A stretch of 64,000 nt of DNA from the NCBI GenBank assembly GCA_000708835.1, contig DF237343.1, positions 1 to 64,000 of the forward strand, written 5' to 3'. The DNA is from Klebsormidium nitens. Its lineage: Eukaryota > Plantae > Klebsormidiophyceae. This document shows, one piece after another, positions 4,901 to 61,700 of this stretch. A model generated the notes under the pieces. The model had not been told where the DNA came from. It made no database searches and saw only the letters and a program-made list of their open reading frames with translations. The position numbers were made by a program, and so were the translations under genes. The number at the start of each line of letters is the position of its first letter. The first letter of the stretch is position 1.

Positions 4901-5686
4901 AATACTGTCTGCAGGATGAAGATGCGGGCTCCACTTGGCCTAGTTTGAGGCCCACTGCTGACGCCATGCCTCGGCAGAGACAGGTCTTGAACCGCCTTTT
5001 GTCCCCGCTTTCTCTAAGAACTTCAGCAGGACCTAGATTGTATTGCTGCTCTTCTTTCTGCCACTACAGAAGCTTGTCAACCAGTCCTCATGTATGCCAC
5101 TCACCGTAGATAGGCTGCCAAGCCGTGTACAAACTCCCGTGTGAACACTTCGTACTGCACGTGCGTTCCTTCCGGCAACCTCCCCTCAACATAGGAGTGC
5201 CAGCAGTGGCAGTGCAGGCAGGAGCACCAAACAGTCCCATCTGCATTCACCTGGAGATTGGAACTGGGCCATACTGACATGATCATGATCGGTGTGGCTT
5301 CTCAAACATAATAGAGTGCCAGAGCCAACATGTAGGAAGACCCATACCGATACGAAATCTGCAGATCACAGGTTGTTAAAATCAAGAGTTGTGCCAAGCG
5401 GAATAGTGAGGGCCAAATGCTCTTTGAAATACATCAGAAGAGAGGAGCAACGTGAGCTCTGACAGGTTTGGACGGAATTGCATCTGCATTTGTTGTTAAG
5501 GTCGTGAATGCCACTCCCTCATCAGCAGGAAAGAAGCAGACTACAGGCATAACCTGGAATCACCTAGGGAGCTTAGCTGCTCACCTGAGGATTGCACAAT
5601 CCGTCAATTTCGTAGAGCCCAAACCTTGCGACAATGCTCGCGTGCGTGGGCAGTTCATCTAGAGCCGACATTTGCTCATGGCAGTC
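1963..5686 (-). CDS. Uncharacterised class I SAM-dependent methyltransferase-like protein (multi-exon; 5' end unresolved, extends above 5686)
   Basis: Phase-consistent exons 5686-5585, 5250-5105, 4591-4471, 3884-3741, 3028-2954 and 2430-1963. They give ...YEVFTREFVHGLAAYLR...KVLEVGAGDGRLSHYL (motif I)...FEIVATDSG...IVIACWQPLGVDWTAEIRRTDSVLEYLLIGEKDGGICGHPWLTWG...SYTISFRR*. Confidence 0.75.
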
Positions 5687-6652
5687 CTGCATCTTAGTTT
5701 CATCGCATGCATTGGCAACGCCTGAAGAGCTCATAAGAACGTCGTGCTCAGCTCAGTCGAAAGTGCAAAGTGGACTGCTGAATCTTCCTCCTCGTTCTCC
5801 TGGCTTGGAGACGTCTTTTCTGCGCCTCAAATGCAATGAATAGTCATCAGTTTGCTACAACTAAATACAAGCTTTGCTGTGCCCAATGCACATTGCTGCA
5901 GGTCAGTACATTCCTGCATGACATTGAGAGCAGCTAAACCAGGAGTCCGAAAAGTTGGTTAGTCTTGGAAACCCGAGACTTGGAGCCCTCAGTTCCTCAC
6001 CAGCGCCCTCTGATACAATCCTAACCGGGCGCCGGACCGCAACAAAACCTTGTTTCGAGTGTTCAAACCCTAATCTGGACGAGGAAGGCTTCAGCGAGGT
6101 CAACGATTTGCATAATCTGCTTCTTGAACCTCAGGCTTGTGAAGCGCTACTCAAATGTGATTCACACCTCTGGAAGCAGAGGACACGGTCCATGATGGCG
6201 TTCAGGGAAAGCAGATCGACTTGGCACAATTCGTTGAAGGGGCAGCATTGGAGTCTATGTGGAAAGGAAGACACTGCAAGAAACAGGATACTGTCTGTAC
6301 CGAATGCAAGGACGAGGGCATGGGCAGTGCTTCACGGAGGAACATGCCCCTACAGGGCATGCTTTGACTTCCAAAGTACTGAGGGTTTGAAGCAGGATCC
6401 ATCAAAGTGTTGGAAAGGCTGCATTCCGGCAGACTGCAGATGGTTTATTTCTGATTCACGTAACTTGCGCCAGATTCAAATCCAAAGAGCCCCATTTGCC
6501 AGGAAGGGCAGGTGTCGTTTGCGGACCCCATTAGGGATCACGTACGGCCAACAAGTTTCTCTGAGCAATCGTTTTGCGCCCAGACTGGTTTGGTAAGACG
6601 ACATGTACCGCTAAGGTCACGGAGACCGCGAGCAAGATTGGGCACATTCATA

Positions 6653-9600
6653 ATGGCTCTCAGATGGGGCAGGCAAATCCAGGCTGTTGTGCTCCTGGTA
6701 CTGGTGCTGATGCAAGCAGCCTCGTTCGTCCGAGGTGGGCCTACAAAACTTTCTGGAACGAACCACAGATTAGCAGGATTTGAACTGAACTTCCCGTCAA
6801 CTGTTGTTCTGTTTGAAAATTGCGCGACCTTCCCCTTAAGCTTGCTGGTTGTGTTCGGTGTCAGGACCTTGAAGTGAATAGCGCCAGACAAGTTCGTACA
6901 TCTGCATTCAATGAAATCATCAATGTCAACGGTCACGTGGTGAACTGAGCAGCAACTTCCAAGAACACAGTTGATCATCTATACACTCTGGCCATCAATG
7001 CCGGTCGGTAGATGCCCTGCTTCAAAGGACCTTTCTGAGAATTCTCATAGCACTGCCAAACGAGGGTTCCTGATCAGGTTGGATAATCTGGTATGAGCGC
7101 CACAAATCAGAGTTGCCACTGAACAGCTGAGGCAGAGCACGAGCTTTTGAATACTGCTTCCATTGGTCCAGGAGAACTTTGAAAGGATCCGGGAATGCTG
7201 TTTTCTGTTATCCAAAAGTTCAAAATGCTGTGAAGTTCTCACAATCTCGTAGGACTTTGGGCAAGAAGGAAAAGGCATAAACCCCAGCGGCAACTTTTTC
7301 AAAAGCTCCTTAGTGGAAGGGAACCCCGAGCATAAGCATTTTTGATCCTATCCAAATTCTTGAAAACTGCCAGTGACTCCAAGGTAATTGATTACAAAGA
7401 CATGAAAGGACGTACTCCTAAAACATTTTGCATGGGCAACAATCGAGCCGACTACAGAACAAGCATTCTGGCGAAAGTCCACAGGTCCAAGAAGCACTCT
7501 GATCTCTTCAGCCCCTGATTTTGCTACAGGCCAAAGTAACGTGCGGCTGTGCGTGGTTGGCCCAGACGAACTCAAGCAGTGTGAGAAGCTGTTAGCAGTT
7601 CTGGCAGCATCGCCGGGCAAACCCAGCTGGATCTGGTAAGGCCATCAAAAGCCGTGGGCCACTGAGAGCCGTACTCATATCTGAGAGGTCGTTCCACTCC
7701 TCTGTTTGGTCGAGTGTCTATTCGCCCCTGTTAGGATCTCTCACTCAAGCTGACGGCTGACCAAGCAGCTCGTTTGAGTTGAACAAGTTGGAACAAGAAG
7801 CGCAACTACAAACGGGGCTTCTGCAGAATTGAACCTCCAATCCTTTTCATCCCTGGATTCGGAGCTTTGCTTGACTGGTAGACTCCGATGACATGCCGTC
7901 CGACTCTGCTGACGTCACTCCCCCAGCTTGCTGACATCATCAGCCCTGTCTTCTGCGCAGCGTGCAGGAGAACGACCGCGAGGGGTGCGTTCTGGCGGTG
8001 GGCAACAGCGTGGCAGATACCATGGTGGCCGCGCCGGGGGACATTGTACACGCATACCTGCAGTTCGGCATGCGCGCAGCACTTGCCGAGGTATGGCAAT
8101 CCCTTGCGCTTTCTTTTGAGACTTCTGATGCAGAGGTACAGCGTCGAGACTTCTGGTCCGAAACGTCAAACGTCCAGGGGCAGGATGTGTTCGCTTTTGC
8201 CTTCTGGGGGCAGGACGTGCGATTGCAGCTGTTTCGCCTCTTTCTAAGACCCACTATTGCCCGGTGCCCCGTCCTTTGAATGGGCGACAGGAATCTGCTA
8301 TCATTTTAAGGAAAGAATTTCTTGTGCGAGTGCTCACTCAGACCCCATCCACCCCAAAGTTCCCAACCAGAGTTTGTTTTACAACTTTGCCACTCAAGTA
8401 AAACCTTGCGCCCCACGAACCTCCTTCATGTGTAGCCTGTCAAGCGCTTCAGCATACTAGTTGACTGCCTAATTCCAAAGCTCTGCTGAAACCATGCCTG
8501 GTGCTCCGTCCTCTTTCCAACCAACGACCCTTTGCATTTAATGCAAAGTCTTGTAAAAAGGATGACATGCATCAACTTCCGTGTGCTAAATGGGGATAAG
8601 ATGATCTATAAGCACCTACAATCTTCGCAACCGGTGTCTTCTCCCAGATCCTTCTCTATAACGCTTTGTCACACCGTGTCTTCCAGAAGCGCTAATTCAT
8701 GCCACGTGTCACCCCCAGGTCTACTCCCCGAGCCCCTCCTTTGCTGACGTGGCAATCGTGGACAAGGCGCTATGCGACGCCCAGCCCAACTTGAGCCTCG
8801 CCGACCTCGCGGGAAAGCGCGCCTGCTTTGCGGGCTACCGGGATGACGCCGGCTGGGATCTGCTGCTCGGGGTGCTCGTCGACAAAGGCATCCTCCAACC
8901 AGTGAGACGCTCGTTCTTGCCTCTTTTTCACATCCACTTTACGAATCCATAAACTGCAATTGTCCTGTTCCTTTCAGTCTGAAGTGCTCGTGAAAGGCGT
9001 TCACCTTTGACTCGTGCTCCGTCTGTTGGAGCTCGACATTTCGAAAGTGCCGAAACGGTTTACAGAACGACCCCGCACCGTTATCTACGACAAATGTCCG
9101 TCGTGGAAAGCGCCTTCTGGCTTCTGAAATGGGGGGGCCTTGTGTCTTGAGTTGTTCGTTGTTTACCTCTTGGAAATTAAGAGTTGCGAATCGTCGGCGA
9201 AGGGGTTGATTATTTGGTTTCTCGCTCTCGCGGTTTCCAACGCGTTTCTTCCTTTATGGTTCCTCTTTCGGACTGTTTCAGGCTTACGAAGAGTCCGAGA
9301 GGAACGTTTCCAAAACATAGAAACGTCACAACCCAGAGAAGCGCCTTCCATGCTATTGCGCTTCTGTACCGATGACCACGTGCCATACTTCTCTAGAATA
9401 CTTGTAGTAAGCTCAAGTTATAGTAAGGACGAACCTAACACTAAAAACCTAAACCCAAGGAATCACCCGCTCCGCACTCGTACCCACCCTAACCACCATA
9501 CTAAATGTACCCGTCCAGTACTATAACTTGAGCTTACTATTCCTACTCTAGAGAATGATTCACGTGCCCTTTCCGCAGGTGAACCAAGATCCGGCTGTTG

Positions 9601-12600
9601 CCAACGACATCGAGACGGTGGAAGCGTTCTTTTCCAAGGTGTGCGCTCCGGGGCCGGCCGACGGCGAGCGGGTGTGCTCTGGCTGCATCGGCGACTGCTC
9701 TACCGCGGTAAGCCACTTCTCGCCTCTTCGTGTTCTCAGCGACATTCCCATTTTTCCGACTTTTGATCATCTTTCGCTTGTCGGGCTTCGTTACTTTTTG
9801 GGATTTGAAGTTGCTTGTGTTCAGCCCTTTGTGGGCATGAGGTCGAGCCAAGTTGTTCAAGAACGAGCCACCCTCGTGGGGATTGGTGTCCCCTTTATTG
9901 AATGGGTTTCCAGCAGCAGTATGCACTTCCAAGTTTCGAAAATTGGGGGTTCAGCAGCTTTGAAATTCCTTCTATTATGCATCGTCTCATATGAGGTACT
10001 TTGCTGTTCAGGCGGACATTTACAGCGGTCAGGAGGGCGCCCTGCAGTGCGTCAGCGACAAGGCTGGTGACGTGGCCTTCCTGCGCAGCGACACGTTGCA
10101 GGCCTTCCAAGCCAACAACCTTGCCACGGGCCGCACGATCCGGGCTGCATCCGAGTTCAGGTGCGCTTCAAGCGTCCAGATTAAAGCTACAGCTAGCTTT
10201 CTCAGGCTTCGTCACTCTGTCTTTTGTCTCTGATCTTGAGAATTTATCTGTGTCTTGTTTCGCCCGTTCTGTTCTCCTTCCGTTTCCTCTCGTACTCCCA
10301 AGTTTTTCAGAATAACCGGAGGTCGTCAACCTCGACGACGACCCGTTTTCCACCTGTGACGTTTGACGTCGTCCGATTTGCAGTCGCCCCTGGCAAGGAT
10401 GCGAGGCGCCATACCCAGAAGCAAACTCACTCGAAGTTTGACCGGCCACGTCACCCCCCACCCATGACGTCACATCTTGACGTCATCCCCGGTCGCTGCC
10501 CGCAGGTATCTCTGCCCGGGGGGCGGCTGCCAGTCGCTGGACCAGGGCCTCAGCGGCTGCTATTTGGCGCCCATCCCGGCCTCCGCGCTGCTCACGCGCC
10601 GCTTCTACGACGCGTCTGCCATCCAGGCCACGCTGACGTCAGCAGCAGCTGACGCGGGCTTCCAGGTGCGTCAGCGACGATCGTCCGAGGATCTGCGCTC
10701 TCAAGCTGACGTTGCGTCTGACCGGAGTGGATTTGCGCTCAGGCGCGGAGATCTGCGGAAGCGTTTGGACAGGCTCCAAATCTTGAGAAACTGCAGCAGC
10801 ACTTACATTAGGATTGGTAAAGCGAAGCGTGAATCTCCGGCTGGAAAGTCCGAATACCCGGAACTCTCGCAATGTTTGGGGTCTCGAAAACAGAATATTC
10901 AAGGCTCACTTTGCGAACTAGCTTCAACTGAGACCAGTTTGAAAGCATTTGAATAGATAAGAAGCTGTTCTAGATGCATAATAGAGAAATAGAAAGCCGT
11001 TCTGATTCCATCATGTCTCACGACTCCATTTCCCTTTTTTTGCCAGGCGCTCTTCATGAACGGCTCCAACCCTGCCGGGCTCATCTTCTCCCCGGCCCTG
11101 TCGGGCTTCCAAACCGTCACCGCGACCCAGCTCGATTATGTCGGACCGGAGGCCCTGCGAGCCTACGAGGCCTTTGACACCATCGACGGCGCCCCGCTGC
11201 AGACGTCCCCACAGACCGGGGGCGGGGCGATAACAAACTTGGGTGAAGACTCTTTTGCACCTCTTACAGCTTCTCCCGACCAACCTGCCAGTTTTAGTGT
11301 CATCTAAGTTAGACTAGTTTCACTCAGCTACAGGCTGACTAAGTTACACAAATATTTTCCCTAAAACTAGCAGGTTGCTCGGAAGAAGCTGTACCGGTAG
11401 CGAGGTCCTATCACTTCAGTTGTTTGGAATGCTGAGACTCGCAATTTGAAGCGTGTTACGATGCAGGCGGAGCAGTTTCAGCGAAGCAGGCGTTGCCGTC
11501 TTTGAAGTCTTCAGTATAGTCGAGTTCGGGGGATGGTGATACGTCTAGCGACTGTAAGGCCCTGTGCTATGTAGTGGTGTTTCATGGCGACTTGTCCTTG
11601 ATCGTCTGGCCACAAGTCTAGTTGAAAGGTCCGAAATGGCTTAATTCAGTCGTTCTCCTAAGCTCTTCGGTCCAATTGCAGGAGGCTAGACAAAAGCGAA
11701 ATACTTCCGAAACTTCGAGATGTGATTGTGAGAGTGCATAACGGCAGTTCCAATCTTGCCGGTCTTATCGCTATTCCTTTAAACGGATTCTCAACCGACA
11801 TCACAAACGTTTCCCGCTCTTGATCGTGTCCGCAGTTCCCCCGCCGTACATCCTCAAATGGTGCACGACCTCCGAGGAGGAGCAAGCGGTGTGCCTCAGT
11901 ATGGCCGTCATTCTCAGGGTCAACGTCAACCCACATTACGTCTGGGGCTGGTAAGCGCCGCTCCTTGCCTCGTATTTTCGGACAACATCTGCTATTAACC
12001 AGAAGTGTAAACCAGATTTCAGGCAGGTCTACGCAGCGTGATTCGCTGCTGACCGTCAATAGAGTGAATAGATCTCAAGTGCCAGAAATCTTCTGTTTTT
12101 CGCAGTCCATCCATGTCCAACTTGAGCTCGCCGTCTCTTCTTTTGGGCATCCACGAGTCGTCCGTCAAGCGATTTGGATCTTTCAGCTACGACAGCGGAT
12201 TGCTGCATTCCTGTCCTTAAACTTGGTGCCGGTTGGAGGGAGATGAAAAACAAGAGACATCCGAACCACCGCTCCTCTAACAAACATGAAGCCTGATTCC
12301 AAGCCCCATCAGTCTAGGTGGGTACAATGCCTGGAAACAGAATAAGAATAGGTTGGCCGAAACCCGCTTTGTTAAACCCGCTCACGTTTAGAGTTGCAGT
12401 CGCCACGATCTCTTTTTACTTTGGTACCACCCGTCTCCAAGTTCAGACAATCTCTTCTTCTCGTTTGCATCAACAACCGTCCCTCAGGCATCTCAGGCCT
12501 TTGCAGCCACTCTCCGCCGCGCTTACATCTGAAGGCGGCAGCGCCGCGTCGGATACTTTCTTTCTATTCCCTCTTTCTCGTTCAGAATGCCTTCCGTCAG

Positions 12601-15600
12601 CATGAGCAACCCTTGACTCACCCTTGCTTTTCCTCCGCCAACACGACGTTTCTATCCTCTTTCAAATCTCGGTCACTGCATCGGTGCACCATTTTTCTCT
12701 TTTTAGGGATTTCGGGATGCCGGGTATTGCCCTAAGCTTATTAGATTCCGAGCCACCGTCCAAGGGGATAATGCATGCGAAGGAGAGGAGAGGACGCAAT
12801 GGAATACGTACAAGAAAGGTCCGTTATGTTGGCTCCTCATTGTCCCCTTCTGTCGTCCGTGTGCAGCGTCCAGATGCCATCCCTTGCTGATTGCATTCTG
12901 GCGATCCAGAAAGGGATAGTGGACTTCGTGACGCTGGATGGTGGGGACGTGTTCTTGGGCTCTGCATATTACCAGCTCAAGGCGTTCGTTTCCGAGGTGA
13001 GTCTGTTAACGACTGGATTAAGGTACTGACGCTTAGAAAACAAGTCACATGTCTGGAAGCTCAAGGGTTCGTCGTGTTTCCAGGATGTCGGGACTGCGAT
13101 TGGGAAGACTCTGGCTTTTCAAAAGAGGGTTGAGTCAGGCTTCTTCCATCCGTTGACGAGTTGGGGTGGCCTGAAGCAGGATTCTTGAAGTTATCCAAAG
13201 CATCCAACTGGTTTCAAAAACTGGAGCATGCCAGAACGCAATTCTTCCAGTATTTGCGTAGGGCAACAACCGACCCCCTCTTTCCACTTGCAGGTGTACT
13301 CCCAAGGCTCCGCTGGCGCCGTCAGCAGTGACGTCATCCGCGCGGTGGCCGTGGTTAAGAAGGAATTGTGCGACGCAAACCCATTTTTGAACTTCGCGGC
13401 CCTGCAGGGCAAGACGAGCTGCCACCCCTACTACCGACAGGAAGCCGGGTATGAAGACGTCACCTCTCGTAACCCGGCTTTTTGACGATCGGTGGTTTGA
13501 CCCTCACGCACTTCCAGAAAGTGTCTTGGATGACATCCTAGATTGGCGGTTCATCTTGCACTCACAATAACTTTAGAACTCTTCACCGAACCCCTCGTAC
13601 TCTTTTCTGATCACAGCCCTCGTCGCAAACCTTTCGAGAACACCCACTTGAGGCTTGACGCTGACCCTTCTTGCGGCCTCCTTTTGCTGTCTAACCACCG
13701 CCAGCCCGTTCCTAACCCACAAATATTCCTCAATTTTCAGGTGGGTCGCACCGGTTGGTTTCCTGCTCGACTCGGGCTTCCTCCCGACCATCAACACCGA
13801 CTTCAGCAAGCGCAACGACCTGGAGAGCGTGCAGACGTTCTTCGCCCGGGTGTGCGCCCCGGGGAACGAAGCCGACAGCCGCGTCTGCAGCGCGTGCGCG
13901 GGGAACTGCTCCATGCAGGAGCCGTTTGCGGGAGACGCAGGTCAGCGTTGCCCTTTTTCCGGATGGCAGATCAAGTTTAACGGCCCCATTATGTAAACAC
14001 GTTGCTTGGACAAGAGATTCAACGAGAAGGGGATGATTGAAGTTTTGAGCAGTGTAGTGGGTCGAACAGGGGTCCTTGTCGCTTATCTAACGCGCAGTCA
14101 AGGAGGCAGGGGTTGCGCCCTGATTTGCAGTCTTCATTTGTGCAGCGAAAGTCTGTTTTTCTGGAGCCAGTCTTTGGAGTACGTTTGACCATAAAATCTG
14201 TCCTTAAAAAAAGACCGAGAGAAGAAAACGGGACCCGCAAGGAAAGGTGGTAGACGTGCCCAGGAAAGCTTACAGTGCAGTCGATTCAGAGTGCGCTCCT
14301 CTTGTGTCTCCATTGCCGGCCATTTCGCCCTTCATACAGCCCTCTTCTCCAACTCTTTCCCGCAACTTAAGATCCTAAAAGCCAATGTCCTCGCACAGGT
14401 GCCCTCAACTGCCTGATGAACGGGGGCGGCGACGTGGCTTGGGTGGACGCAAACGCGGTGACCAATTATGCGAAGGGCGGGCCGCTCGCACAGAAGTGGG
14501 CCAACACCACCGTCGATGGCCTCCGGTGAGCCATCGACGGCTCCTTGCTGTGCATTCATGCAACGTGTCTTACCATGGTCAAGTGCCTGCTTCATGAATA
14601 CGATTTGCATTCGGCCGAATCTGGAGGGACATGGCCTTCTCAAATCCGTGCTGGGGCTCTGAAAAGAGGAAGCGAAAACGAGAAACTAAATATTGCTTTC
14701 GATATCAAAGGGATTGTAAGCTTGCACTTGAAGTAAATGGCCCTCGTTTGACAGGAACCAACTTTGGACCATGCGGTTTATAGATTCCTACGTCTCTCAC
14801 TTTCCTCCCAAGACCCTGAATCTTTCTACACCCGCCCTGCCGTAGCCGAGGCTCCCGTAAAAGTTGCCGAACCCAAAACTCTCAGAATGCAAAATGCTAC
14901 AAACCCTAACCCTCTCCTAACCCGTCGCTTAACCCGCAGGTTGCTGTGCCCGGACGTGGGCTGTGTTGAGGTGGGCCGAATGACGGCGGACTGCGTGCTC
15001 GCGAGCGTCCCGCCGCGCGCCGTGGTGACACGTGGCGACATGGCGATTGCCATACCGGGGCAGATCCTGCTGAATGCAACGCGGGACAAGGCCTTCCAGG
15101 CGCTCTTCTTGGGGGGGACCAACACCGGGAGTTTCGTCTTCAGGTGGGGGGCCAGGAAAAACGATTACCTTTCTCCTCCGGCCCCAAACGTCGTGGAAGA
15201 AGATGTTGGTACTCCAAAGAGTGACGTCCCTGCTTCTTTATTGGAGCGTCAGCTTCTTCCATTGAAAATAAAAGCAGAAGAATCGTGCTTGACTTTCAAT
15301 AGCTTGGTCGCTCAGCGACGCCCCTTCAGAAAGTTAGTGCATTTGGAACCCTTTGCTTAAGCACCGTTGATGTAACGTCGAGCTTATCGAACTGATTGTA
15401 GTGTTTCGAACGCCGGTGCAAGGATGGCAAGGGTCGTTCTTGACTTGATATAGATGTTCCTCAGCATAGCGCCCCTTCGGACAGGAACGTTCGCAATTAG
15501 GACCCTGTCATTTCGGATTACAAGAGTCTTGTCCAGCGCTCTTGGACTGACCTTCGTGTTTCGGACGCCGGCGCAGGGCGGACACGCGCGGTCTGGCGCC

Positions 15601-18600
15601 CATTACGACGAGCACGGACGACTTTCTGGGCGCGAGCACGCTCGAGGCGTACAGCGCGCTCTTCGAACTAGACGCGGCGCCCGTGGCCACCAGTGAGCAT
15701 GGATTCTTTTTGAGAAAACGCGAGAGGAAAAGCTTGGAAGTTCAATTGCTATAGGAAGGATTCATTTTCGACGGCTGTGGTGCTCTTCGGTCACGTTCTG
15801 GTCACCGCCGTTGCTTGAGGCCGTTCGAGTTGGACACTTGTTCGTTCTGATCAAACTTGGCAATGAGCCGCCATGCAGAGGTGAGAACTCGATAGAGCAA
15901 TAGATCTCGTCTTGCCGGATGATCGAAGTGATCTCCACGAATAGAAGTTTCTTCTTGCGCGGAATCTCCAACCGTTTCTGGAGTAGAGGAAATCTTATAA
16001 GACCTTCACAAACCAATAACCTTAACTAAAGGAAGACACAAAGTAAGACACAAACAAGAATAAACCAGAGACAGAAACGGACCTATAACCTGCAGACGTG
16101 ATTCGGTGGTGCCTCCCCGGCCGGCCCGAGTACCAGCAGTGCCTGCTCATGCTCCCCGCACTGCAGGCCACCGAGCCGTCCCTCAACTGGCAATGGCAAG
16201 CACCGCCTCTCGTTCGCCTTTTCGATTTGTTCCGCTTCTTCTGGACACTCACCCTTGTTTTTCGATCATCCATTCCTACATTCGTTCTGTTGGTGCACTT
16301 CTTGCGGCATTGATGGAAGCTTTAGCATTTGCTTTAGGCAGAGGAGTCCGGGCTTCTTTTCTGCTTGTTTGCTCTGTCTCTATGACCCTTCTCATGTCCC
16401 TTGCTCCGGTCCTTCTTCCCCAGACTCTGCCTCTCTAGTCCTTCTCGTGCAACCCGTTTGGCGGCTTTACAGAAAATGCCCCGTCTTCTCCACCTTCATC
16501 CTCCGCTGCCCTTCAGCTATGCCGCTTGACACGTGGCACGCCGTGCAGCATCCTGCGCAACACGACGCAGGCGTGCATCGACGCGGTGACGTCAGGTGAC
16601 GCCGAGGTGGTGATGCTGGACGGGAACCACATGTTCGAAGAGGTCAAGTCCGGCAGGGTGAGGTTTCTGCCCCGTCTCTAGTTCGCCCGTTCTTGCAGCT
16701 ACTCGTGCTGCTTATTTGAGCAAGGAAAACTCAAAGCTGCTCCAGATTCAAAAGTGCAACAGTATTTTTGGCTTTCTCGGCGCACCGCCTTTTGGTTGCT
16801 TCAAGAGTGCCACAAAACGAAGCCTTTTACAGAATCTAATTGCAGAATCTGACTCCCGCGAGGCCCATGTCCGTAGCTGGACACTTCGCAGCCCTTGCTG
16901 CTATCATCACGCTTGATTTTTTCCCTCACCACCGTTGCTTGGTATTTGTTGTCCTTGTTTCGTGACGTTTGTTTTTCGTACAGTCCGTTCGAACCCTGAC
17001 CTGACACTGACGAGGCCCTGTTTTCCATCGGGCAGCTGACGCCTACGGTCTCCGAGAGCTACGACGAGCTCCACTCGCTGACATACAGGGCCGTGGCCGT
17101 GGTCCGGAAGGAGTTCTGCGACCGCGAAACGATCCCGACGCTGAAAGACTTGCGCGGCAAGAACTCGTGCCACGGGAGCACGCTCTCCGCTTACGGCTGG
17201 ACCGTTCCGGTGGGCGACATGCTGCGGAGCGGAGCGATGTCGCCGATGAACGGGGACCCGCAGGTGAGTTCCCGCTGACGATGCGGGCTTTTTTAGACTT
17301 ACGTGCCAGCGATGCAGCATCGTTTACACTCAAAGAGACAGAATCGAGGTTGCAATACGGATCATTTGAGCAGCCCAATAGCCGGCCAGTGTAGGCTTGT
17401 TGTTCTTACTCGAAACGTAAAACAAATGTTAGAAAGGCTTGATCTTGATTCAATCAGTTTCCAGTGTCATTGATATAGGGAATTGTAAGGCTATTCGGCC
17501 AGGTTGTATCACGTCTTCAACTCAGGAAGCTGCTGGTTAGCATCAAACTCAAGTAAGGCAATGCTTGGGGGAGGTTCTACGCGTCACTTAGAGCAAAACT
17601 GTTCATCATTGTTCCTGAGAGGATTGCGTTGCTTTTGAACCCCTCGAGGAGGCTTCCTGAAGCATTGCCAGAAACAGAACGCGATGGTCAGGTTGTGCGT
17701 CACGCTTCCAACGTTCCTCAGAAAGATGGGTCCAACCGAGCAAGAATCAAGTGCTCGTCCTTGCCCCCGCAGTTACCGAACGACATCGAGTCGGTGGAGC
17801 AATTCTTCGGCAAGAGCTGCGCCCCGGGGGAGGTCGACTCGCAGCGCATCTGCACCGCATGCCCCGGGGACTGCGGGCTGCACACCGATCCTTATTTTGG
17901 CACCGTGGGGGCCTTCCGGTGCCTCATGGAGGGGGCGGGGGACGTCGCCTTCGTGCGGCACACCACGCCCGGGGAGTACGCGCAGGGAGGCCCGGGGGCT
18001 CAGGTGAGAGTAGAAAGTTGCTGAGAACCGCGATAAGAAGTATGATTGCTGTGAAAATTCGCCGCTGATCCTGACGTCGTAATGGGTGCCTCATGTAAGG
18101 CAGACAGAGTCGCGGCGGTCAACTTCTGTATTTGTGCCAAGAGCTTGCATCAAGCTGGACTACGAGGCTTTCATTGGTGTCATGATTTCTTAGTCATGAT
18201 CCATATAGGATCGGGTCTCACAATCAATCCGCCCTCACTGTCTTCACTTTGTGACCTCCTAAGCTCTGATGGGCTTGATATTCTAACTTATACTTCCCTT
18301 TCCGCAGCCGTGGTCCACTCTCCCGGCCTCCGAGTTCCGCCTGCTTTGCCCCTCGGGGGGCTGCGCGGCGATCGGGCAAGAGGCCACGTGTGCGTTCACA
18401 AACGTCCCCGGCGCGTCGCTGCTCGCGCGTCCGAACGTGGCCGCGAACGCGCTCGCGCTGCTCCAGGGCGCGCTCGCGCGGCTGGGCGACGGAGCGAGCC
18501 CGCATTTCAATTACCTCTTTGAGCAGAGCAAGAACACGGCCGGCCTCATCTTCGACTACAAGTGAGGCGCCGCAGCCTTTCCTCAAGGGAACGCTCGATT

Positions 18601-19784
18601 GCCTTTCCCGACGTCGCCGTTCGAGCAATGTTTTCAGTGCCGTTCGGATCTTGATGTGGTCGCAGAAAGCGCTTGGCAGACCCATAGACTCGTTCTTTGT
18701 GACTTCGATCACAGCCAGCAGGGGTTTGGAAGCGCTGGTAATCCCAAAGACGGTGTTTTAGCGCAACATGCCGTTCCTTTGCCCTCGAATCTCGTTAGGA
18801 GGGTCCGGTTTGTTGTGAGACGACAACAGCGCCGTCAGCCTTTCCGACAATTCTCACAGCACATTAGCGAGAACCGATTGTCCCGAGAAGCGGAATAACT
18901 CTGCGTCTTTAAGGCTTGGCACGCCTCCTCTTTTCCGCATTGTCACCAGTGGCTTCGTCACACACTCCGGGGAACTTTCAGAACAAGTCCTGTTGCTTCT
19001 CGCCCGCTGATGCTGACGGTCACTGTCCGTCCGTTGTGCAGTCTGCACTCCTTGAACCCGATTAACGAGACGGCCGAGGTCTTCCTCGCGTCGACGAGCC
19101 TGCAGTTCGCCTCGTTTGGAGCGCTGAGCGAGTTGGCACTGCAGCAGGGGGTCCCTAGCAAGCGGGCCCAGCACGGGCTCGGTAAGCTTACCCCGACCCA
19201 CGTGTCCTCAGCATGACCGTTTTGAAAAGACAAGTGTCCCTCGGATGAAGGATCCCCGGGCCTTCGACAGGGGTGTCCAGGGTTGTACACTGGGGCTCAT
19301 CCGAGCGAACAGGTGTAAGATTCGTCGTTTTATCCGGCAGAAAGATGTGACGTCTCGGGCCGACGGCTATCTTTGAGCAGCTGTTCGATGCAGATATTCT
19401 GAAGTGCAGTCGTTCTGCGGTGTGTGGTGATTTGAGGCTGGTCATGGTGCAAGGTCAAATGTGGGCGTTGTCGATAGCTGGTTTCACGAAGTTGACAGTG
19501 TCAATTAGGTGATTGATCTTCTCCCTAACATTTGATAAAGCTAACGAACCGAGTCAGATGTCCTCCCTTGGCCGTCTCCTATCATAGAACAAAGTCTTCA
19601 AAGGGAAATTTTTCTGTGCGTTACAGGTGCAGGTGCGATTGTGGGCATTGTGTTTGGAGTGCTGGGCGGCGTTATGCTCATCCTGGGTGCTTCCTTCTTC
19701 GTGTGGAAGAAGAAGTTCCTGCAGAAGAACCGGATGTATCGGTATGAAAGGTCCGAGAGCAAACTGAAGCTGACAGCCCTGTAG
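6653..19784 (+). CDS. Three-lobed transferrin-like protein with signal peptide and C-terminal transmembrane anchor (~1133 aa, 22 exons)
   Basis: Exons 6653-6734, 7530-7635, 7961-8090, 8719-8901, 9579-9707, 10012-10160, 10506-10665, 11047-11242, 11836-11950, 12867-12996, 13294-13448, 13741-13940, 14399-14525, 14940-15143, 15577-15692, 16096-16195, 16549-16657, 17036-17263, 17773-18003, 18308-18561, 19042-19181 and 19627-19784 sum to 3402 nt with all phases consistent. Each lobe shows transferrin motifs (VRLC/LKWC/IRWC; VAIV/AVAVV; GKxxC...GW; FFxxxCAPG; GAxxC...GDVAF/W; LCP...C). N-terminal MALRWGRQIQAVVLLVLVLMQAASFVRG; TM segment AIVGIVFGVLGGVMLILGASFFVW followed by KKK. Confidence 0.92.
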
Positions 19785-21947
19785 ATACGACTGACATAAT
19801 GCGGAAGCAGCTGTAGCATAAGGTTGCCACCTTTGCTTAGAGATCAAGCTCGGCTCTTGTAGTCCTCAACCAGCTTGTGAAGCTACCCTTGTTGGGATTT
19901 GCACCAGAAATATTGTCACTGAAGTGGAGTTGTTTGTAGATCGATTTAGCAGTACAAGTTGGCATGCGAGCCTTTGTCAAACATTGAGAATGCAGTTTGG
20001 GTTGGACAACCTAGGGACAACGTCAGAGCAGCTAGATAATGTCCGTTCGAGAAGCTTTGCGGTCGTCTCCGCCATTGTGGAGACGTACATTTCCTTTCCG
20101 GGCCGCCTGGTTAATTCAGTTGTCACCACAAAACTTGCATCAGTGCGGTTCTGCCAGCTACGTTGTGCACAGTCAACTAGCTGTTGGCTATATAGATGTC
20201 AGGCCCTTGAGTCAAACCAGTCCAGGCCGGGCGTTTCCTGATTGTGGACCGTACGATGTATAGCACTGAGGTTCTCATGCTGAGCGGCTGGATTCATTTG
20301 ATTGCCAGAATTACGATTGAGACAGCGTGTTGTGGGCTGGCTCCGCATGCCAGGTCTCTCCACCCACACCTATCATGCTTCATATGTTAAACTTTGTCGA
20401 ACCCGATCATGGGTACACCGCGTTCCACTAATTACCTATAGCACATGACCGGAGTTGGCACATGGGCGGCATGCGGCATTCAGTGCTAGCTTGCCACATG
20501 GTCACTGATTGCCTTCACGTGCATGTGATCGGACAATCATATAATGTTTTTAAGCCGCGCACGTGTTAGCAAGCATGCATGCCAGCCGGACGATCTAGGC
20601 CGTGTATCAAAATATAGCTTTTCAGTGTTCTAAAAGCTTTGAACCTTTCGAAGCTTCGACGCAGGTTATCATGGAATAATAGCATTCAACGTTATCGTGA
20701 CCGTTGTAAATCAAAGCTCGTAGAAGCAACCACAATTATTGCAACCCGGCCAACTTGAAAATACTATTCGAGCCACCTCAGTTCACCTATACTCATACAT
20801 TCAACCGCCCGGCCATGCATTGCAATGCTTGGCTGGGCGATTGAACGTATGAGTATAAACGGCACTGCAATGCACCGTTCCATGCATGATCCAATCCAGC
20901 ACCTTGCTGCAAAGAACTTCGCAGCGGCGCAGATCGAGGTTTTAATCGTTTCCCATGAAAGTGGAGCGCCTCAGCGCGTTGTACGAGCATGGTGTTTTGG
21001 CACAATTGTCTGCACTTGGTCCTCTGCTCTGGTTCGGTGCAACGTCAAACTGCTGCCGTGCGACAGTGGTAGACAAGTTCTTCTGTTTCAATTTCGGCAA
21101 GCTTCACTTTCTACCAGATTCTTTGATTTGGAGTGACAGGGGCAAGCATTGCTGCCCAGTTTGACCGAAGAGTACATACTTGGGGTTCTTGAGGCTTGGG
21201 GAAGTTGTTGGTGAGCAGCAGAGTACGTACCATACCACAAAGAAAATCTGTAGTTTTGTCGATAGAGTACGCAAGTATCACACTAGCGCTCTTCAAAGAA
21301 GTGGTACAGCTTGCCTCGCACGAAGAAGTCACTGTCCTGCTGCATTGGAAATGTCTATGCATCTAAGTCCAAGGAGAGGTTGAGAAAGCAATCAAAGACT
21401 CCAGATGCCTGTCACCTTGAAGAACTTGTCCAATTTGCGCAACAGATTGGCAACTTGCTTATATTATTATTGTTGACTTCGAAGGAGGGGCTTGACGACA
21501 AGAGCAAAAGTCAGTGTGCCGCTACACATAGTGCCGATGATTGCATGCCTCAAGCTTTGCAAGTTTAAAGCACTCCACTGAAGTAAGTAAGACTTGGCTT
21601 TCTAACTTCCGCCAAAAGAGCGCATGCCACTAGCTCTCTCAACTTTGTCCTACCTAGCGGCCTAGCCTGGGTCAGGTCCTACTTCCCGCTTGATTGTGCT
21701 CTGGAACGATAAATGAACTCAGAAGCTGCGGACATGGCAAGGAGGATCTTTGCTTTACACAACCATCCTTTCCTTGCATCGAAACAAGTTTCCATTGAAG
21801 CAGGTTGCCCCCCAAGCACATTCTACAGACAAATCCTGCCCAGGCCTATGCGCAAGGTGCTACCTTGCTGGCTATAGCATCCTTCAATATAAGATCATAA
21901 TGTCCCATCACGAAACCACACAGTTGGATAAGCTTCTGAAAGGAGGT

Positions 21948-22029: not shown

Positions 22030-22801
<772 letters not shown>

Positions 22802-23733
22802 GAAAGTGCCAAATCAAGAAAGTTCTGTCTCACTTACACACACCGTCCGATAAGATCAAATTCTTATCCGACGGTACAAGAGTCTCATCAAGGGTACCGC
22901 ACGGGGTGGATACTCAGCGCGAGCAGCCCGCGATTCGCGGCCGGCTGTACACCGGCGCCCGCCGGCCGCGGCCCGGGCTGGCAAGGAAGGTTCGTGCGCG
23001 ATTGTGACGCGCATACCAAACAGAGCCGGCAGTTTCGCTGTGCATCATTGCATGTGGGCAGCCTGTCGTAATCCGGTCGGCGCACGGACGGTTCTACCGT
23101 CCGATGAAATGTCTTGCGTTCAGCGACCGTCGATAAAGCAACCATGTGACATTCCGCGCTTCTGCAATTGAATTGCCGCAGACTGCAACTTCAGGTGCAG
23201 TACCGTATGTGACAGCCATGAGCTAATCATGGAGTGGCTCCCAGCTTCTCGCTGACTCTCAGCGTGTATACGGTAGAAAAGACGCGAGCTCTTGCCAGCT
23301 CAATGAGGATGCATATGCAAGGGTGTAATGCCGTGAGATCTAGCACGCTGAGCTGATCAGGAAGTCACCTGAGCGAATCCAACTGTAATGCTGTCAATCA
23401 GCAAGTCATATAGCGCATCTGCAAGGCACCTTACTTATGGTAGGTTCTTGCAGTTAGTCTGGGGTTGACTCTCAACTCGTACACCCTCGGATCTTTGATG
23501 CTTTAACACCTAGATTGGTGTGTGTGATTAACGTATCTGAAGTCATACCAACTATAGACATGTTTGAAGAATCACTAAACCCATTTTTCGGAGCAGCTGT
23601 AACCATCTTGAAGCAGATCCTCAACCAATCCTTGGCAAGTGGCATAGAAGTGCAGAGAGTCTTTCCGCGAATCTTCAGCTCTTTGGCACTGCCGCTTGCA
23701 CCGCCGTTTGTCCACCCACCAGCAGAACTAGAA

Positions 23734-26574
23734 ATGGCAGAGAGTAGTGCAAACACCACCATGATGGGCGTCGCAGCTGCCGTAGTAGATGCGTGCGCTG
23801 TCGCTGAAGAAGAGGAAGGCACCTGCTATGACCCCTACCAAGCAAAAGTCCTCAGCATTGTATCAATCTTTGTCATTTTGGTAGCGAGCGCTATTGGCGT
23901 GTTCTTGCCGCTCTTTGGGAAGAAGTGCCTCAAGAGCTGCCAACCTGGGAGCTTCGTGTTCATTGTTGGTGAGCGACGTAGAGCAATTGCTGTGTTTCCT
24001 TCTCGGAAGTCATGAGTATTGAATGTCATGCAACTCTCTTAGATAGCGCCCTAGATAGAAAACATTCAAATGATGACTGGGGGGAGAAATTCGGGCGTGG
24101 ATCAGATCTGAGGGTATGCGTATTCCACCACTAAGTTTTGATCAAGATACAAGAGTCGCCTCCACACTGCCTAGTTGCTGCACGGAGTATAGCACCTCTG
24201 TAATGGTGACCGCTTCTGGGGTTTATGTCCATGACCCTTGTAAAGGTTATCGGACCCATGTACCCAGCATTCCTAAAGGCTTGATGACAAAATCAAATAG
24301 TCCAAAGTAGACGCAATCGGTTCTACTGTCCCAGCTTCGAATTAAATTGACTGGACCTTCTTCTCATACAGGAAAATGCTTCTCCTCCGGGATCGTCCTT
24401 GGGCTCGCCTTCACGCACGTCCTCTTTGACGCCGTTGAGAAGCTCCAAAGCGAGTGCCTAAGTGACACCTGGCACAAATTTCCGTGGGCCTTCTTCATTG
24501 CCGCCCTTGGAGTAGTTGGCAGCCTCGCACTTGAATTGTTAACCGTCAGTTTCCACGAACTGATCACCGGTAACGAGTCCCTAAACATTCTCGCCAAAGC
24601 GCACCACCATGAGGCGGGACAGTCCACGGAGAAGCAAGCAGCGGTGGTTAGCGCTGAGCCAACCGATGGCATCTTCGAACAGGTGGCAGTTGATGAGAGG
24701 GGGTGGACTAAAGAGGAGGCCGCCGCAGCAAAGGCGCTTCGGCGGAAACGAGTAATTGCTGAGGTGAGGTCTATTGTCTGCTTGCTTCATCCCATGACAC
24801 TTCCCTCACGACAGCTTGTTTGTGGGCACTTCACACAAACATCCTTGCTGTTTGCTTGCGGGGTTTGTTATCTGGTCACGTTGCTTCTTCACCCTTTGAT
24901 CTTGGTGGTAATTTTCTTGTATTGAGTCCGAAAGAGTTCTGCACACCAGGCTCTCAAGGCAAACGGAGTCTCTGCTAACGTTAGAGGCCAGGAAACTGCA
25001 TAACGTTGAAAGCCAAACTTTCCCAGGAATGGAACGATTTCCAATGTGAAGTCAAAGTTCCTACCAACGAAGCCCAAGGCTCATTTGTCTGTTTCTAATC
25101 TCCTTCCAACGGCCCACTTTAGAACCAAGGAAAGTCAGAATTAGCAGGTAGCTGCTAGCTTTGACACATTGACCAGAGGGACGGTCCCTTTTTGGGGGAC
25201 CCTGGGCACAAACCCTCGACCATGACCAAAGTCTTCTCAGAGTCTTCTCAATAGCAACCCTTAAGGCCAGTGCCGATCAAGCACCAGACAGCGGGACTTG
25301 TGAAAGGTCGCCCTTCCATTGAAGCTCCACCATGCCACATCCGTCTTGGTTCGACTTCCAAACCTACTAAATCGGCCACCCCTTGCGTTGACCAATCTCC
25401 GAACTTCTTCCTAAGTATCTCTGAAACCTCAAACCGTAGGATCTGCGATCCCCGAAGCTCTTGGAACGCAAGGTCTCCGACGCTCTAAAAACTTATGAAC
25501 CAAAGTCTTATACTGTCGGCACTCGTCTTTGACAGGTCCTCGAGATTGGCATCGTGACGCACTCAGTCCTTGTCGGGCTCGGCCAGGGAACTAGCACCAA
25601 CAAGTGCACCGTCACGACTCTACTGGTCGCCCTCATTTTCCACCAGATCTTCGAAGGGATTGCACTTGGCAGCTGCATCGTAGAGGCAGCGTACAGCCTT
25701 ACGACCACTCTGTTGTTCGGAGGGCTGTTCGCGATCACGACACCCTTTGGGATTGCTCTGGGGCTTGCGATCAGGTAGGCATGGAATCCCTTTTTGCATC
25801 CCTTTTGCGGCTTTCTGTAACCGTCCAACCGTTTGACTGCGAACTTTCTTTGGAAATGTAAAATGGAGTGCGACCAGCTTCCGAAGGTTTTGGTGAAGGC
25901 AGTCAGATTCGATCCAGCGCCCTACGTTGAAGGAAGTCAAGGGACCCTCTCACGTGGGATCTCCTTGCCAATCGTAAGAGAAGCAACTGCACAACTCTCT
26001 ATCTCTTCTTGCCGTACATAGAACAGGATTAGTCTGGCTTATGCAGTTGGTTAAGTTGATGTTCGCTCACCACACTCACCAGTGCTAACAGAACCGTACT
26101 CAGCAGTTGACCGTGGTCCATAAACAAGTTCTCCGAAAAGTCCAAAAAGTCTGCCTTTCATCAAACTGTTGTTAAGCTCTCACATCGAGTAAACTTGGAC
26201 GTACCAGACTTCCAACATTTGCACACGGGATGAGTTTCGTTGCCGTCTCAGTCCAAGGTCAGCAACCCCAACTCCAAGTAACACAACGTTCCATCTGCAT
26301 CTTCGTTCGTGCGCATCAGGGTGATCGGTCTCACCCAATGGCTCGCTTCGACTGCAGGTCCTCTTACAACGACCTGTCCGCTTCGTCCCTCATCACGGAA
26401 GGCATATTCAACTCGGTGACTGCCGGCATTTTGGTATACATGGCGACCGTGGACCTTATCGCCCACGACTTCTTTAGCGAGACCATGCTCAAGAGCCGAA
26501 AGACGCTCTGGTGCAGCTACGGCGCGCTTGTGGCGGGGCTTGGCTGCATGTCGGCAATCGCGTATTGGGCTTGA
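23734..26574 (+). CDS. ZIP-family (ZRT/IRT-like) Zn2+/Fe2+ transporter (~360 aa, 4 exons)
   Basis: Exons 23734-23968, 24372-24763, 25536-25774 and 26358-26574, all phase-consistent. Motifs: KCFSSGIVLGLAFTHVLFDA; TM4 VLEIGIVTHSVLVGLGQG; TM5 ALIFHQIFEGIALG; TTPFGIALG; GILVYMATVDLIAHDF; C-terminal MSAIAYWA*. Confidence 0.95.
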
Positions 26575-58700: not shown

Positions 58701-61700
58701 AGTGGGTCCGGCTGCATCAAATGCTCGCGCACTTCTGAAAACTTTCAGAATCTAGGAAGTCTGGTCTGAGCCACTTACTTTACCGCCAATTGCACGTGAT
58801 TCCACACAGCGGAAGCAAACCGTTCCGGTTAAAGGGCAGATTTAACATTTGACGGGACGGCGTAGCAAGGTCTATCATAAGGAGCGGGATGATTGAAAGG
58901 CGGAAACACCGTTCAGCTTGGTGCACCCCTAATGTTACCCTCGACATCCGACAAGCTTTCAAAAAAGCTGGGGGCCTTCTATAATCAGAATCGGAACAGA
59001 GTGGCGTCTGACGATAGTATTGGGTTTCAATGACACACCTTTGTTGTTGCTTCTTAGAAGGTCCACGAGCTCCTGAAAAGGAAAGAGAAAGTGGGGAGCT
59101 GAGACCCGGTAATGGGCGGCAGTAGAATCACAGGTTTCTTGGCCGTTGATGATTCCTTTATGGGCTGGTTGAAAAGTTGTTATGTATCCAATAATCAGAC
59201 TTGGACAAAAATGAGCCTTGGAGCAAGATTGACCATCGATCAATTGTCCAAGGATCTGGGAATTGAGCCTGGTAAACAGCCTGCTTAGCAGCCAAAACAT
59301 CCTGTGATTCCTTGATAGTGCTGGGACTTATCGTGTAACGCCCGATTTTCCCCTCTCGCACCGAGGCGAATCAAGCCTCGTTTCACTTAGGTAGCCAGGA
59401 TCGTAGTCTCGTCTTATCCGCTTCGCTCGACATAAAGTTGATTTTACCACCAACAGATGTCGCCCTCAACACCTGGCTGGATCTAGAAGTAAGCTTACGC
59501 GCGAAATACATCCAGGAGGTCACTGGCCTTGAACGCACCTCTTCTTAACTGCGATACTGGCTAATCTGCTTCCTGTTTCACACTTTTCTCGTCTCTCTCT
59601 CGAACAGAATCTTCCTCACCTCCCTTTCTTGCGCGCTGAGCTTTGCGCTCTCCTCCACAATCCTCCGCTTCAGCCTCGCCACGTCTTCCCGTGGAGGCCC
59701 CTCCAGCGTCCGTTTCTGGACACGTGGCCTCATCTCCGAGAATTCCGTAGGAACCCTCTCCTCGACCTTTGGACTCGACTTGGTCGCTGGTTCGACCACA
59801 TCCGGCTTCTGCTTCTTGGCATCACCATGGCCTTCGTTTCCCTTGGCGCTAAGTTCTCTCATAACCTGCTGGTTGATGCAAGTCGCGGAAGTATGCTCAT
59901 GCGATCTTCGTGCCGCTCCAGTCTTGAAGCGCGACTCACAGTACGCGCACTTATAAGGTCGCTCCTTTTCTTGGTCGCCCCCTGCCTCGCCGCCGTCAGT
60001 GGCCCTCTTCCGCGACGCCTCCGCCTCGGCGGCCTTGCTGACGTCATCGCTTGGCCTCTTTCTAGACGCTTCCGCATCGGCGGCCTTGCTGACGTTATCG
60101 CTTGGGCCCTTGGCGCTTGGAACTCCTGTGCCGCTCTCCGGCCCCCTCTCAGTCGCACCATTGTTGCGGCCAGAACCCGTCTTTTCCGAATGAAGCTGCT
60201 CCCGGACAGTTTCTTTCCTCTCCCGGCCAGCCTCTTGTCGGCTGCTGAGACCAGCATTCTCGTCAACCGAAGCCGTTCCGCGACTGGGTTTCAACCCTTC
60301 CCTCTCAGAAGATGTCTCAAATCCCGGACGCTTCGCGGCCTGTTCCACACCGTCCGGTGTCGGGCGCTTCTCGGACGTACCTCCCTTCTCCTTCAGACCG
60401 TTTGACGCTAACCTGTCCACGCTTTCGGGAGCGTTAGGTCTCCGGACACTCCCCTTCAAGCCTCCCACAGCTCTCATCCCTCTGTCGTCCATTTTCGCCA
60501 CGCGCGCGGCAATACGGTGCTTTCGCTGCGTCAGCGTTTCTCGCTCCGGCCTTTCCGTTGGTTGAACGTGGTCTTTTCCTCTTCCTTCCCCATCTGGAGT
60601 CCTCACATTAGGCAACCTCTCGGTTCCACTTCCGGTTTTTAATCTCTCCCCAGCGTTGGTCTTGCTTCCACCTTCTCCACTTGCACCAATGCCACGTCCC
60701 TTCAGACTCTCCTGGCCCCCGTCTTTTTCTGTCCCCTTTCCTCTCTCAGTCCCTGCATCTTTCTGCCTTTCCAACTCTTCCCCTCGCTTCCCAGTCTCAT
60801 TTGTTCGAACTTTCGGCTCAACAACCCCCGCTGCCTCGCTCCGCATCTTCTCGATCCGCAGCCTCGGAGCCTCTTCAGCCTCCCCTTTCAGCGCCGCTTT
60901 TAACGCTTCTTCTGTCAGCTTTCCCCGCACAGCCTCCCCTTTCAGCGCTGCTCTCAACACTTCTTCTGTCAGCTTCCCTCTCGCAGCCTCCCCATTCTCC
61001 ATCTTTGGGGTGCTGGCACCCATTTTCACGCTTCCGCACCCGTCGGCTGTTTGGTGATCCCCCTCGGGTGGCTCATGCAGCGACCCAGCGTTCCCGTCAT
61101 TACTATCTCGTTCCGTCCCCTCTTCATTCCGCCTCGCGTTTTTCCGTTCCGCCGCCTCGGGCACGCCGTCTGTTTCTCTTCGAAGCCCGTCCCGTTCCGT
61201 CCAGTCCCCGTCCGCCTTCGTTCGCTCGTCCCTCCTTTCGGGCCGATTTCCGTCCAGCTCCGTCCGCATGCCGTTCCGCTCCGTCCGACTTCCGCCCGCC
61301 ACTGCCCCGGTTCCTTCCGACCCCGCCCGCATGCCGTTCCGCTCCAACCGGATTCCGTCCGCTCTCAACGGCACTTCGCTCCTTTCCGTCCGGATCCCAT
61401 CCGCACCCGTGCGTACGTCTCTTTGTTCGGTACGGGCCCCGTTTCCTTCGGCTCGGAGACGGTTCCGTTCTAATTGCTGCCTCTTCCGCTCCCGCTCGTC
61501 GAGGCCCAACGTCGCTCCTGCCACCCGCTTCAGGTTCTCCTTTCCGGCCAGAGCTTGCCTATCGAATGCAGACGCCGGCTTCGGCACTGACGTCACTTTG
61601 TCCTTCCTTGTGACGTCAGCGTTGGGTCCGGTGCCAGCTCTGGCCGCGATAGGCGCCTTGGCGGGCCTGCGAGGCGGTAACGAAACCAAGTCAGGTCCGA

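Follow-up and report, generated by a model that had tools for sequence, protein, structure and literature searches.

The window analysed here is a stretch of 64,000 nucleotides (nt) of Klebsormidium nitens DNA (assembly GCA_000708835.1, contig DF237343.1, positions 1 to 64,000). It contains a gene for a protein with a signal peptide, three consecutive transferrin lobes, a transmembrane (TM) helix and a short tail. Fe3+ binding in the transferrin manner is unlikely for this protein, because no lobe has both tyrosines of the canonical iron site or the Thr/Arg anchor for carbonate. The gene probably specifies a functional, expressed type-I membrane protein with three transferrin-fold lobes, which belongs to a streptophyte clade and does not bind Fe3+ as transferrins do.

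Stop-free stretches of the + strand between 6.6 and 19.8 kb encode transferrin-like peptides in three consecutive series. Twelve exon-bearing pieces match the Pfam Transferrin profile (PF00405), and their order along the profile is that of three successive lobes; the expectation values reach 7.7e-16 (17557-18021), 3.1e-09 (17000-17275) and 1.7e-05 (12772-13026). The gene was rebuilt from splice signals as 22 exons on the + strand (6653-19784), with an open coding sequence of 3402 nt for a protein of 1133 amino acids (aa). The acceptors are AG, 19 of them CAG, and the donors are GT with the exception of one GC. This GC donor, taken from spliced contigs, is that of intron 16 and puts the residues WQ into the protein. 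At the end of exon 2, comparison with the ortholog described below places the donor (CTG/GTAAGG) at 7635/7636 and the start of exon 3 at 7961, giving the sequence W-I-C-V-Q. A phase-2 intron is located within the Cys codon of this W-x-C motif in lobe 1, and likewise in lobes 2 and 3. On the resulting protein, an in-house hidden Markov model (HMM) of a lobe, built partly from these same lobes, finds three full-length domains with 475-523 bits.

For convenience, the site residues are numbered as in human transferrin (Asp63/Tyr95/Thr120/Arg124/Tyr188/His249, PDB 1A8E). The site reference, P0018, is a vertebrate transferrin whose best match is ovotransferrin (4.9e-230); both of its lobes carry the canonical residues. 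The site columns were read by MAFFT, by hmmalign (283 lobes), in an 18-lobe alignment and, for lobe 3, by HMMER against ovotransferrin 1AIV, and all of these agree. The flanking motifs AVAVV, SCH..GW, GAF.CL and LLC...VP are well conserved, so the columns are aligned without doubt. At positions 63, 95, 120, 124, 188 and 249, lobe 1 has Ala, Phe, Ala, Asp, Gln and Ser; lobe 2 has Asp, Ile, Pro, Gln, Asp and Arg; and lobe 3 has Asp, Tyr, Gly, Ser, Thr and Ala. In these sequence alignments, the combination of Tyr95 and Tyr188 is present in none of the three lobes, and neither are the carbonate anchors Thr120 and Arg/Lys124, which are replaced by A/D, P/Q and G/S, respectively. Among the relatives tabulated, the lobes with a canonical or near-canonical site keep Tyr95 and Tyr188, including those of the Dunaliella type, G-Y-T-K-Y-N, which agrees with the residues named for Dunaliella TFN1 (PMC10372677).

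Apart from the six site positions, a Tyr located two residues past position 120 (CH-x-G-Y) is conserved in the lobes of the green lineage. Lobe 3 (SCHGSTLSAYGW, 17036-17263) is without this Tyr but has a Tyr four residues later, at position 126, in both Klebsormidium and the ortholog; a displacement by one turn of the helix may thus compensate for the loss.

The Kyte-Doolittle profile (19-residue window) has maxima of 2.53 at residues 1081-1101, assigned to the TM helix, and of 2.08 at residues 8-26, assigned to the signal peptide. The TM helix is followed by KKK and then by a tail of 25 aa that ends in KLKLTAL. The protein has seven N-x-S/T sequons. Each lobe has 14 cysteines; 12 of them occupy cysteine columns of vertebrate transferrins, and the other two are specific to the green lineage and are found in all green-lineage lobes, those of Dunaliella included.

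The gene is present in 18 sequencing runs from six studies according to a run search. Spliced contigs of four runs from four studies were aligned to positions 13900-19899. Each of the four runs has the same ten joints (introns 13941 to 19626), nine of them GT..AG and one GC..AG, and is otherwise identical in sequence. The RNA label of the runs is a guess; the contigs are without introns, which marks the runs as transcripts. All four runs contain the joint 19181/19627, which leads to the TM exon. Two single contigs (X11 record 7, 4247 nt; X6 record 14, 3794 nt) span lobe 2, lobe 3 and the TM exon, and therefore rule out that this exon belongs to another gene and was added by an artefact of the model. 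By arithmetic, the 4247-nt contig extends about 526 nt to the 5' side of the ATG at 6653 and has a 3' untranslated region (UTR) of about 320 nt. The leader (6127-6652), if unspliced, contains ten upstream ATGs, including that of a 134-codon open reading frame (ORF), and its 5' end is tentative. Further upstream, a block of 124 nt (5097-5220) has a counterpart with 77% identity some 2 kb before the start of the ortholog, and could represent either an exon of the 5' UTR or a piece of an adjacent gene.

Much of the initial annotation of this DNA, which had been made from the letters, stands. The layout it described, from the signal peptide through the three transferrin lobes and the TM helix to KKK and a short tail ending LTAL, is borne out by the gene model, the PF00405 matches and hydropathy. 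Its table of ligands for lobes 1-3 recurs residue for residue in every alignment, and its statement that the Asp/Tyr/Tyr/His set is intact in no lobe holds at the sequence level. The disulfide cysteines are retained as it had said, with 12 of the 14 cysteines of each lobe in vertebrate columns, and the TM exon (19627-19784) is part of the transcripts of four runs. In the 22-exon gene model, introns 13941 to 19626 are seen in transcripts, and the exons upstream of them are given by splice signals and the ortholog.

The ortholog was found in an exhaustive search with exon 19. The best database match is a 131-aa fragment (86% identity) from a Joint Genome Institute (JGI) metagenome contig, Ga0590114_0006002; beyond this fragment, the same protein search returns only full-length relatives at about 30% identity, and the Klebsormidium protein itself is absent from the protein collections searched. 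A metagenome scan with exon 19 for more orthologs gives one unrelated match (49%). We read the orthologous gene from 24.9 kb of the JGI contig. All 22 exons are present, 18 of them with equal length, the splice sites are at corresponding places and the ORF is intact. All seven exons of lobe 1 are conserved, five with equal length, and exons 6 and 8 differ by 9 nt. Only the exons align between the two species; the introns do not. The orthologous protein has the signal peptide, the three lobes, the TM helix, the KKK (as KKKFL) and the KLKLTAL end.

The two proteins are 69, 79 and 76% identical in lobes 1, 2 and 3, respectively, and all 42 cysteines are kept. The ratio of nonsynonymous to synonymous changes (dN/dS, Nei-Gojobori) is 0.17 overall, 0.18, 0.14 and 0.17 for lobes 1-3 and 0.22 for the TM helix and tail, with a dS of about 1.0. 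Every part of the gene thus has a dN/dS of 0.14-0.22, indicating that purifying selection acts over the full length of the gene, which is no relic. Of the 18 positions of the former ligands and anion contacts, 11 have the same residue in the ortholog (two of six in lobe 1, four of six in lobe 2 and five of six in lobe 3), as against an average of about 75%. This agreement fits a lost ligand role in the first two lobes, and in the third a pocket that is conserved.

The full-length relatives at about 30% identity include proteins with seven lobes (Bryopsis) and four lobes (Caulerpa), as well as several from transcript assemblies with three or four lobes, and the sites of most of these multi-lobe proteins are canonical or nearly so. 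When each lobe is compared by itself, the closest proteins are the single-lobe ones of Marchantia, Chara and related organisms (30-35% identity). In a maximum-likelihood tree of 78 lobes (quick search), lobes 1 and 3 group with single-lobe proteins of Chara braunii, Marchantia, Mesotaenium, Spirogloea, Coleochaete and angiosperms (Craigia/Durio, Stephania), with a support of 90 in the Shimodaira-Hasegawa-like approximate likelihood ratio test (SH-aLRT). Lobe 2 is placed one level further out, in a larger group in which streptophytes predominate, and the Dunaliella lobes form a separate group of 25 rows. The free tree leaves the three lobes apart; the approximately unbiased (AU) test does not reject uniting them (p 0.125), as a triplication within the lineage would have it.

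The three lobes share the motifs of this clade, namely the 14 cysteines, LCP-x-GGC and ND(I/V)E. In the 18-lobe alignment, the streptophyte single-lobe relatives read E/D-Y-(G/P/S)-(S/T)-x-N at the six sites. This reading is clade-wide, and the missing carbonate anchors, the usual lack of His249 and the variable Tyr188 therefore characterise the clade and not this gene alone. Lobe 3 matches the clade signature (E/D63, Y95, G/P/S120, S/T124) with D-Y-G-S, whereas lobes 1 and 2 deviate from it and have diverged further. In most of the single-lobe relatives, the C-terminus is a hydrophobic stretch with no tail after it and looks like a glycosylphosphatidylinositol (GPI) signal. The start of the Klebsormidium TM helix, GAGAIVGIV, resembles the GGAIAGIV of the TM-anchored transferrin matches P0022, P0044 and P0140; P0009 of the Dunaliella cluster has GGVAGIAVG.

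The angiosperm members deserve a separate remark. The 'lactotransferrin-like' proteins of Malvaceae (P0095/P0161, from Craigia and Durio) and of Stephania (P0139) group with those of Marchantia (P0064) and charophytes (SH-aLRT 98) and have the green-lineage cysteines, which suggests vertical descent within the streptophytes. A related claim by Bai et al., cited in a review (PMC8401529), may merit re-examination.

Among known systems, the protein can be compared with the transferrins of Dunaliella. These number 13, with 1-10 domains each, and all have a signal peptide, a TM helix and glycosylation sites (Davidi et al. 2023, PMC10372677). The Klebsormidium protein has the same TFN/TTf-type layout, with a signal peptide, tandem PF00405 lobes (three in TFN1), glycosylation sites and one C-terminal TM helix (Fisher 1998; PMC10372677). 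The Dunaliella domains are classed as 'conserved' or 'diverged' (PMC10372677), the latter having lost most of the iron and anion residues like the lobes described here, and the two extra green-lineage cysteines are common to both. An anchored multi-lobe algal transferrin with degenerate lobes is thus of an already known kind (PMC10372677). The iron-binding domains of Dunaliella, however, keep Tyr/Tyr and Thr/Lys (G-Y-T-K-Y-N), as no Klebsormidium lobe does, and the Klebsormidium lobes group elsewhere in the tree, at about 26% identity to P0009.

The streptophyte single-lobe proteins (Chara braunii GBG78945, Marchantia polymorpha PTQ29263/BBN15172, Durio XP_022744091, annotated as 'lactotransferrin-like', and those of Mesotaenium, Spirogloea and Coleochaete) share with the Klebsormidium protein the 14-cysteine pattern, LCP-x-GGC, ND(I/V)E, the replacement of Thr120 and Arg124 by G/P/S and S/T, and the loss of His249. 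They differ in having one lobe (about 420-500 aa), where the Klebsormidium protein has three lobes, a true TM helix and a cytosolic tail; in addition, lobes 1 and 2 of the latter are without Tyr95. In a literature search, we find no published study of this clade or of this gene; one paper matched to Klebsormidium and transferrin was a false hit, the word being 'transferring'.

Similar cases occur in animals. Melanotransferrin differs from the Klebsormidium protein in its animal origin, its two lobes and its GPI anchor. It is a membrane-attached transferrin with one lobe that does not bind iron, although its N-lobe still does, and among solved structures it gives the best match to exon 18 (MTf/p97, PDB 6XR0; 1.8e-19). 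Saxiphilin and the inhibitor of carbonic anhydrase, also among the solved-structure relatives, are likewise transferrin-family proteins under selection after loss of the iron site, but are soluble and bilobal and come from animals.

Some points of the initial annotation weigh less in the light of these comparisons. The loss of ligands is for the most part not special to this gene, and the streptophyte transferrin-like clade has most of the same losses. The type-I anchor on a multi-lobe algal transferrin has a precedent in 13 of 13 Dunaliella transferrins (PMC10372677). In the phylogeny that the annotation suggested, the lobes go with streptophyte proteins and stand apart from the Dunaliella lobes.

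In the model that we propose, the ectodomain would consist of three tandem lobes of transferrin fold (type II periplasmic-binding-protein-like, or Venus-flytrap), and the single C-terminal TM helix with its short basic tail would anchor it at the cell surface. The protein would be a triplicated, TM-anchored member, from the Klebsormidium lineage, of a streptophyte transferrin-like clade that appears to have abandoned the classical Fe3+/carbonate site. Lobe 3, with Asp63/Tyr95/Gly120/Ser124 and five of six site residues kept in the ortholog, is the candidate working lobe for another small ligand, which would be an anion or a chelated metal. The other two lobes, having diverged further, would act as its partners or as spacers. 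Sorting or internalisation may be the role of the conserved tail, KKKFL...KLKLTAL. A wider proposal, possible but tentative, is that the protein belongs to an unstudied streptophyte family of surface-attached transferrin-fold proteins, ranging from algae of the Klebsormidium type up to liverworts and certain flowering plants, whose pocket (E/D63, Tyr95, a small residue at 120, Ser/Thr124 and Asn249) would accept a ligand other than ferric carbonate, and that the present protein is a three-lobed TM receptor form of it with specialised lobes.

Several points weigh against the loss of transferrin-like iron binding or against the model on which it stands. Exons 1-11 follow from splice signals and exon-by-exon conservation in the ortholog, the transcript check covering 13941 onward, and the signal peptide and TM helix are assigned by hydropathy only. 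The orthologs found number one, and the support of the tree is moderate (quick search, SH-aLRT 90). An iron site rebuilt from other residues would be compatible with the alignment; in lobe 3, a His is positioned three residues past Asp63 and a Tyr at the position of Ala126, and both are kept in the ortholog. Dunaliella transferrins work in iron uptake, and the ZIP neighbour described below leaves room for a role in metal acquisition.

In the main rival reading, which we regard as unlikely, though not implausible, the protein takes up iron or another metal like Dunaliella TTf/TFN. Fe3+ or a ferric chelate would be bound at a non-canonical site, most probably in lobe 3, and be passed to membrane uptake or internalised. 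Its precedent is the induction of membrane-anchored algal transferrins by lack of iron, and the diverged domains of Dunaliella, which accompany a lack of iron-responsive expression, speak against it (PMC10372677). Asp63 and Tyr95 are present in lobe 3 of both species and widespread in the streptophyte clade, and the TM start resembles those of other anchored transferrin matches; however, no lobe has both tyrosines, and Thr120 and Arg124 are replaced in three of three lobes. In favour of this reading, the ZIP/IRT-like gene follows 4 kb further along the same strand; the 3.5 kb of sequence beyond the ortholog shows no such gene, but is too short to decide.

It is improbable that the protein is a surface protein without a small ligand, that is, a rigid, disulfide-rich scaffold for protein contacts, comparable to the inhibitor of carbonic anhydrase, with roles in the cell wall or in adhesion. 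The transferrin fold is reused elsewhere for protein binding and for non-iron ligands, and lobes 1 and 2 keep the cysteines of the fold with little cleft chemistry, but this analysis gives no direct sign of a protein partner, and the clade-wide cleft signature in lobe 3 suggests a conserved pocket.

A decaying copy drifting towards a pseudogene, as considered for the diverged Dunaliella transferrins (Davidi et al., PMC10372677), would explain the degraded canonical ligands and the differences between the two species at the former ligand positions, most of them in lobe 1, but is close to refuted and is rejected on dN/dS (0.14-0.22 in every lobe and in the TM helix and tail) and expression, given the correctly spliced transcripts of four studies, the 42 of 42 cysteines kept and a 1133-codon ORF that is intact over 22 exons in two species separated by about one synonymous change per site.

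Features of the three-lobed transferrin gene of Klebsormidium nitens (positions in the window)
Feature	Position	Strand	Details and evidence
Exon 1	6653-6734	+	Start codon and predicted signal peptide (MALRWGRQIQAVVLLVLVLMQAASFVR-G); first in-frame ATG after a stop; ends in phase 1, GT donor; ortholog exon 1 comparable (MARECHAMWTAVLLGLVLLQGLSSTH, phase-1 GT donor)
Lobe 1 (residues 29-379), exons 2-8	7530-11242	+	PF00405 matches, splice sites, ortholog exons
Lobe 1, single exons	7530-7635, 7961-8090, 8719-8901, 9579-9707, 10012-10160, 10506-10665, 11047-11242	+	
Lobe 2 (residues 380-729), exons 9-15	11836-15692	+	PF00405 matches; introns after exons 12-15 in spliced contigs; ortholog exons of equal length
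Lobe 2, single exons	11836-11950, 12867-12996, 13294-13448, 13741-13940, 14399-14525, 14940-15143, 15577-15692	+	
Lobe 3 and short stalk (residues 730-1080), exons 16-21	16096-19181	+	PF00405 to 7.7e-16; all introns in spliced contigs of 4 runs; HMMER matches to ovotransferrin and melanotransferrin
Lobe 3, single exons	16096-16195, 16549-16657, 17036-17263, 17773-18003, 18308-18561, 19042-19181	+	
Intron 16 (GC-AG)	16196-16548	+	Donor GCAAGC, acceptor CAG; contig joint 16194/16548, movable by one place to 16195/16549
Exon 22	19627-19784	+	Predicted TM helix (GAGAIVGIVFGVLGGVMLILGASFFVW), KKK, predicted cytosolic tail FLQKNRMYRYERSESKLKLTAL, stop; Kyte-Doolittle maximum 2.53; joint 19181/19627 in all four runs; 79% identical in ortholog
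3' UTR	19785-20103	+	Approximate end, by arithmetic; 4247-nt contig (X11 record 7) extends about 210 nt beyond 19899

The exon blocks of the lobes are symmetric. The lobe units are 1053, 1047 and 1062 nt long, each a multiple of three, and are bounded by phase-1 introns on both sides; phase-1 ends are those of exons 1, 8, 15 and 21 (6734, 11242, 15692 and 19181), so that the signal-peptide exon ends in the same phase. Such 1-1 phase modules make in-frame duplication of lobes possible, and the gene is a clean example of lobe multiplication via phase-1/phase-1 exon blocks. The unusual donors differ between the two species. Intron 16 has a GC donor in the Klebsormidium gene and GT in the ortholog; at intron 12, the ortholog apparently has GC (CAG/GCCAGT, after ortholog position 13057) and the Klebsormidium gene has GT.

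The ZIP/IRT-like metal transporter gene is located at 23458-26571 on the + strand, about 4 kb downstream of the transferrin gene, with matches to Pfam Zip (PF02535) at 24311-24922 (2.2e-11) and 26176-26571 (9.7e-12). Its motifs near HKFPW and at the C-terminus presumably resemble those of plant IRT1. A histone H4 coding stretch (22320-22724, - strand) lies between the two genes; the 3.5 kb available on the downstream side of the ortholog shows neither the ZIP nor the H4 linkage, but is too little sequence to decide. At the far end of the window, an open frame of 725 codons (59578-61755, - strand) has Arg/Glu/Gly/Thr repeats in ERNGMR-like units and a C2H2-like zinc finger motif near its C-terminus, and the surrounding 60-62 kb stretch has a strong GC and AT skew.

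Transferrins are the textbook carriers of ferric iron, and in Dunaliella anchored multi-lobe transferrins are a main route of iron uptake. In the version from the land-plant lineage described here, every lobe is without the iron and carbonate residues, yet the gene is strongly selected. This argues that 'diverged' algal transferrin domains are more than decaying copies, and points to an uncharacterised family of streptophyte transferrin-like proteins that reaches liverworts and some angiosperms. Its ligand, once found, would reveal how the transferrin fold is reused in plants.

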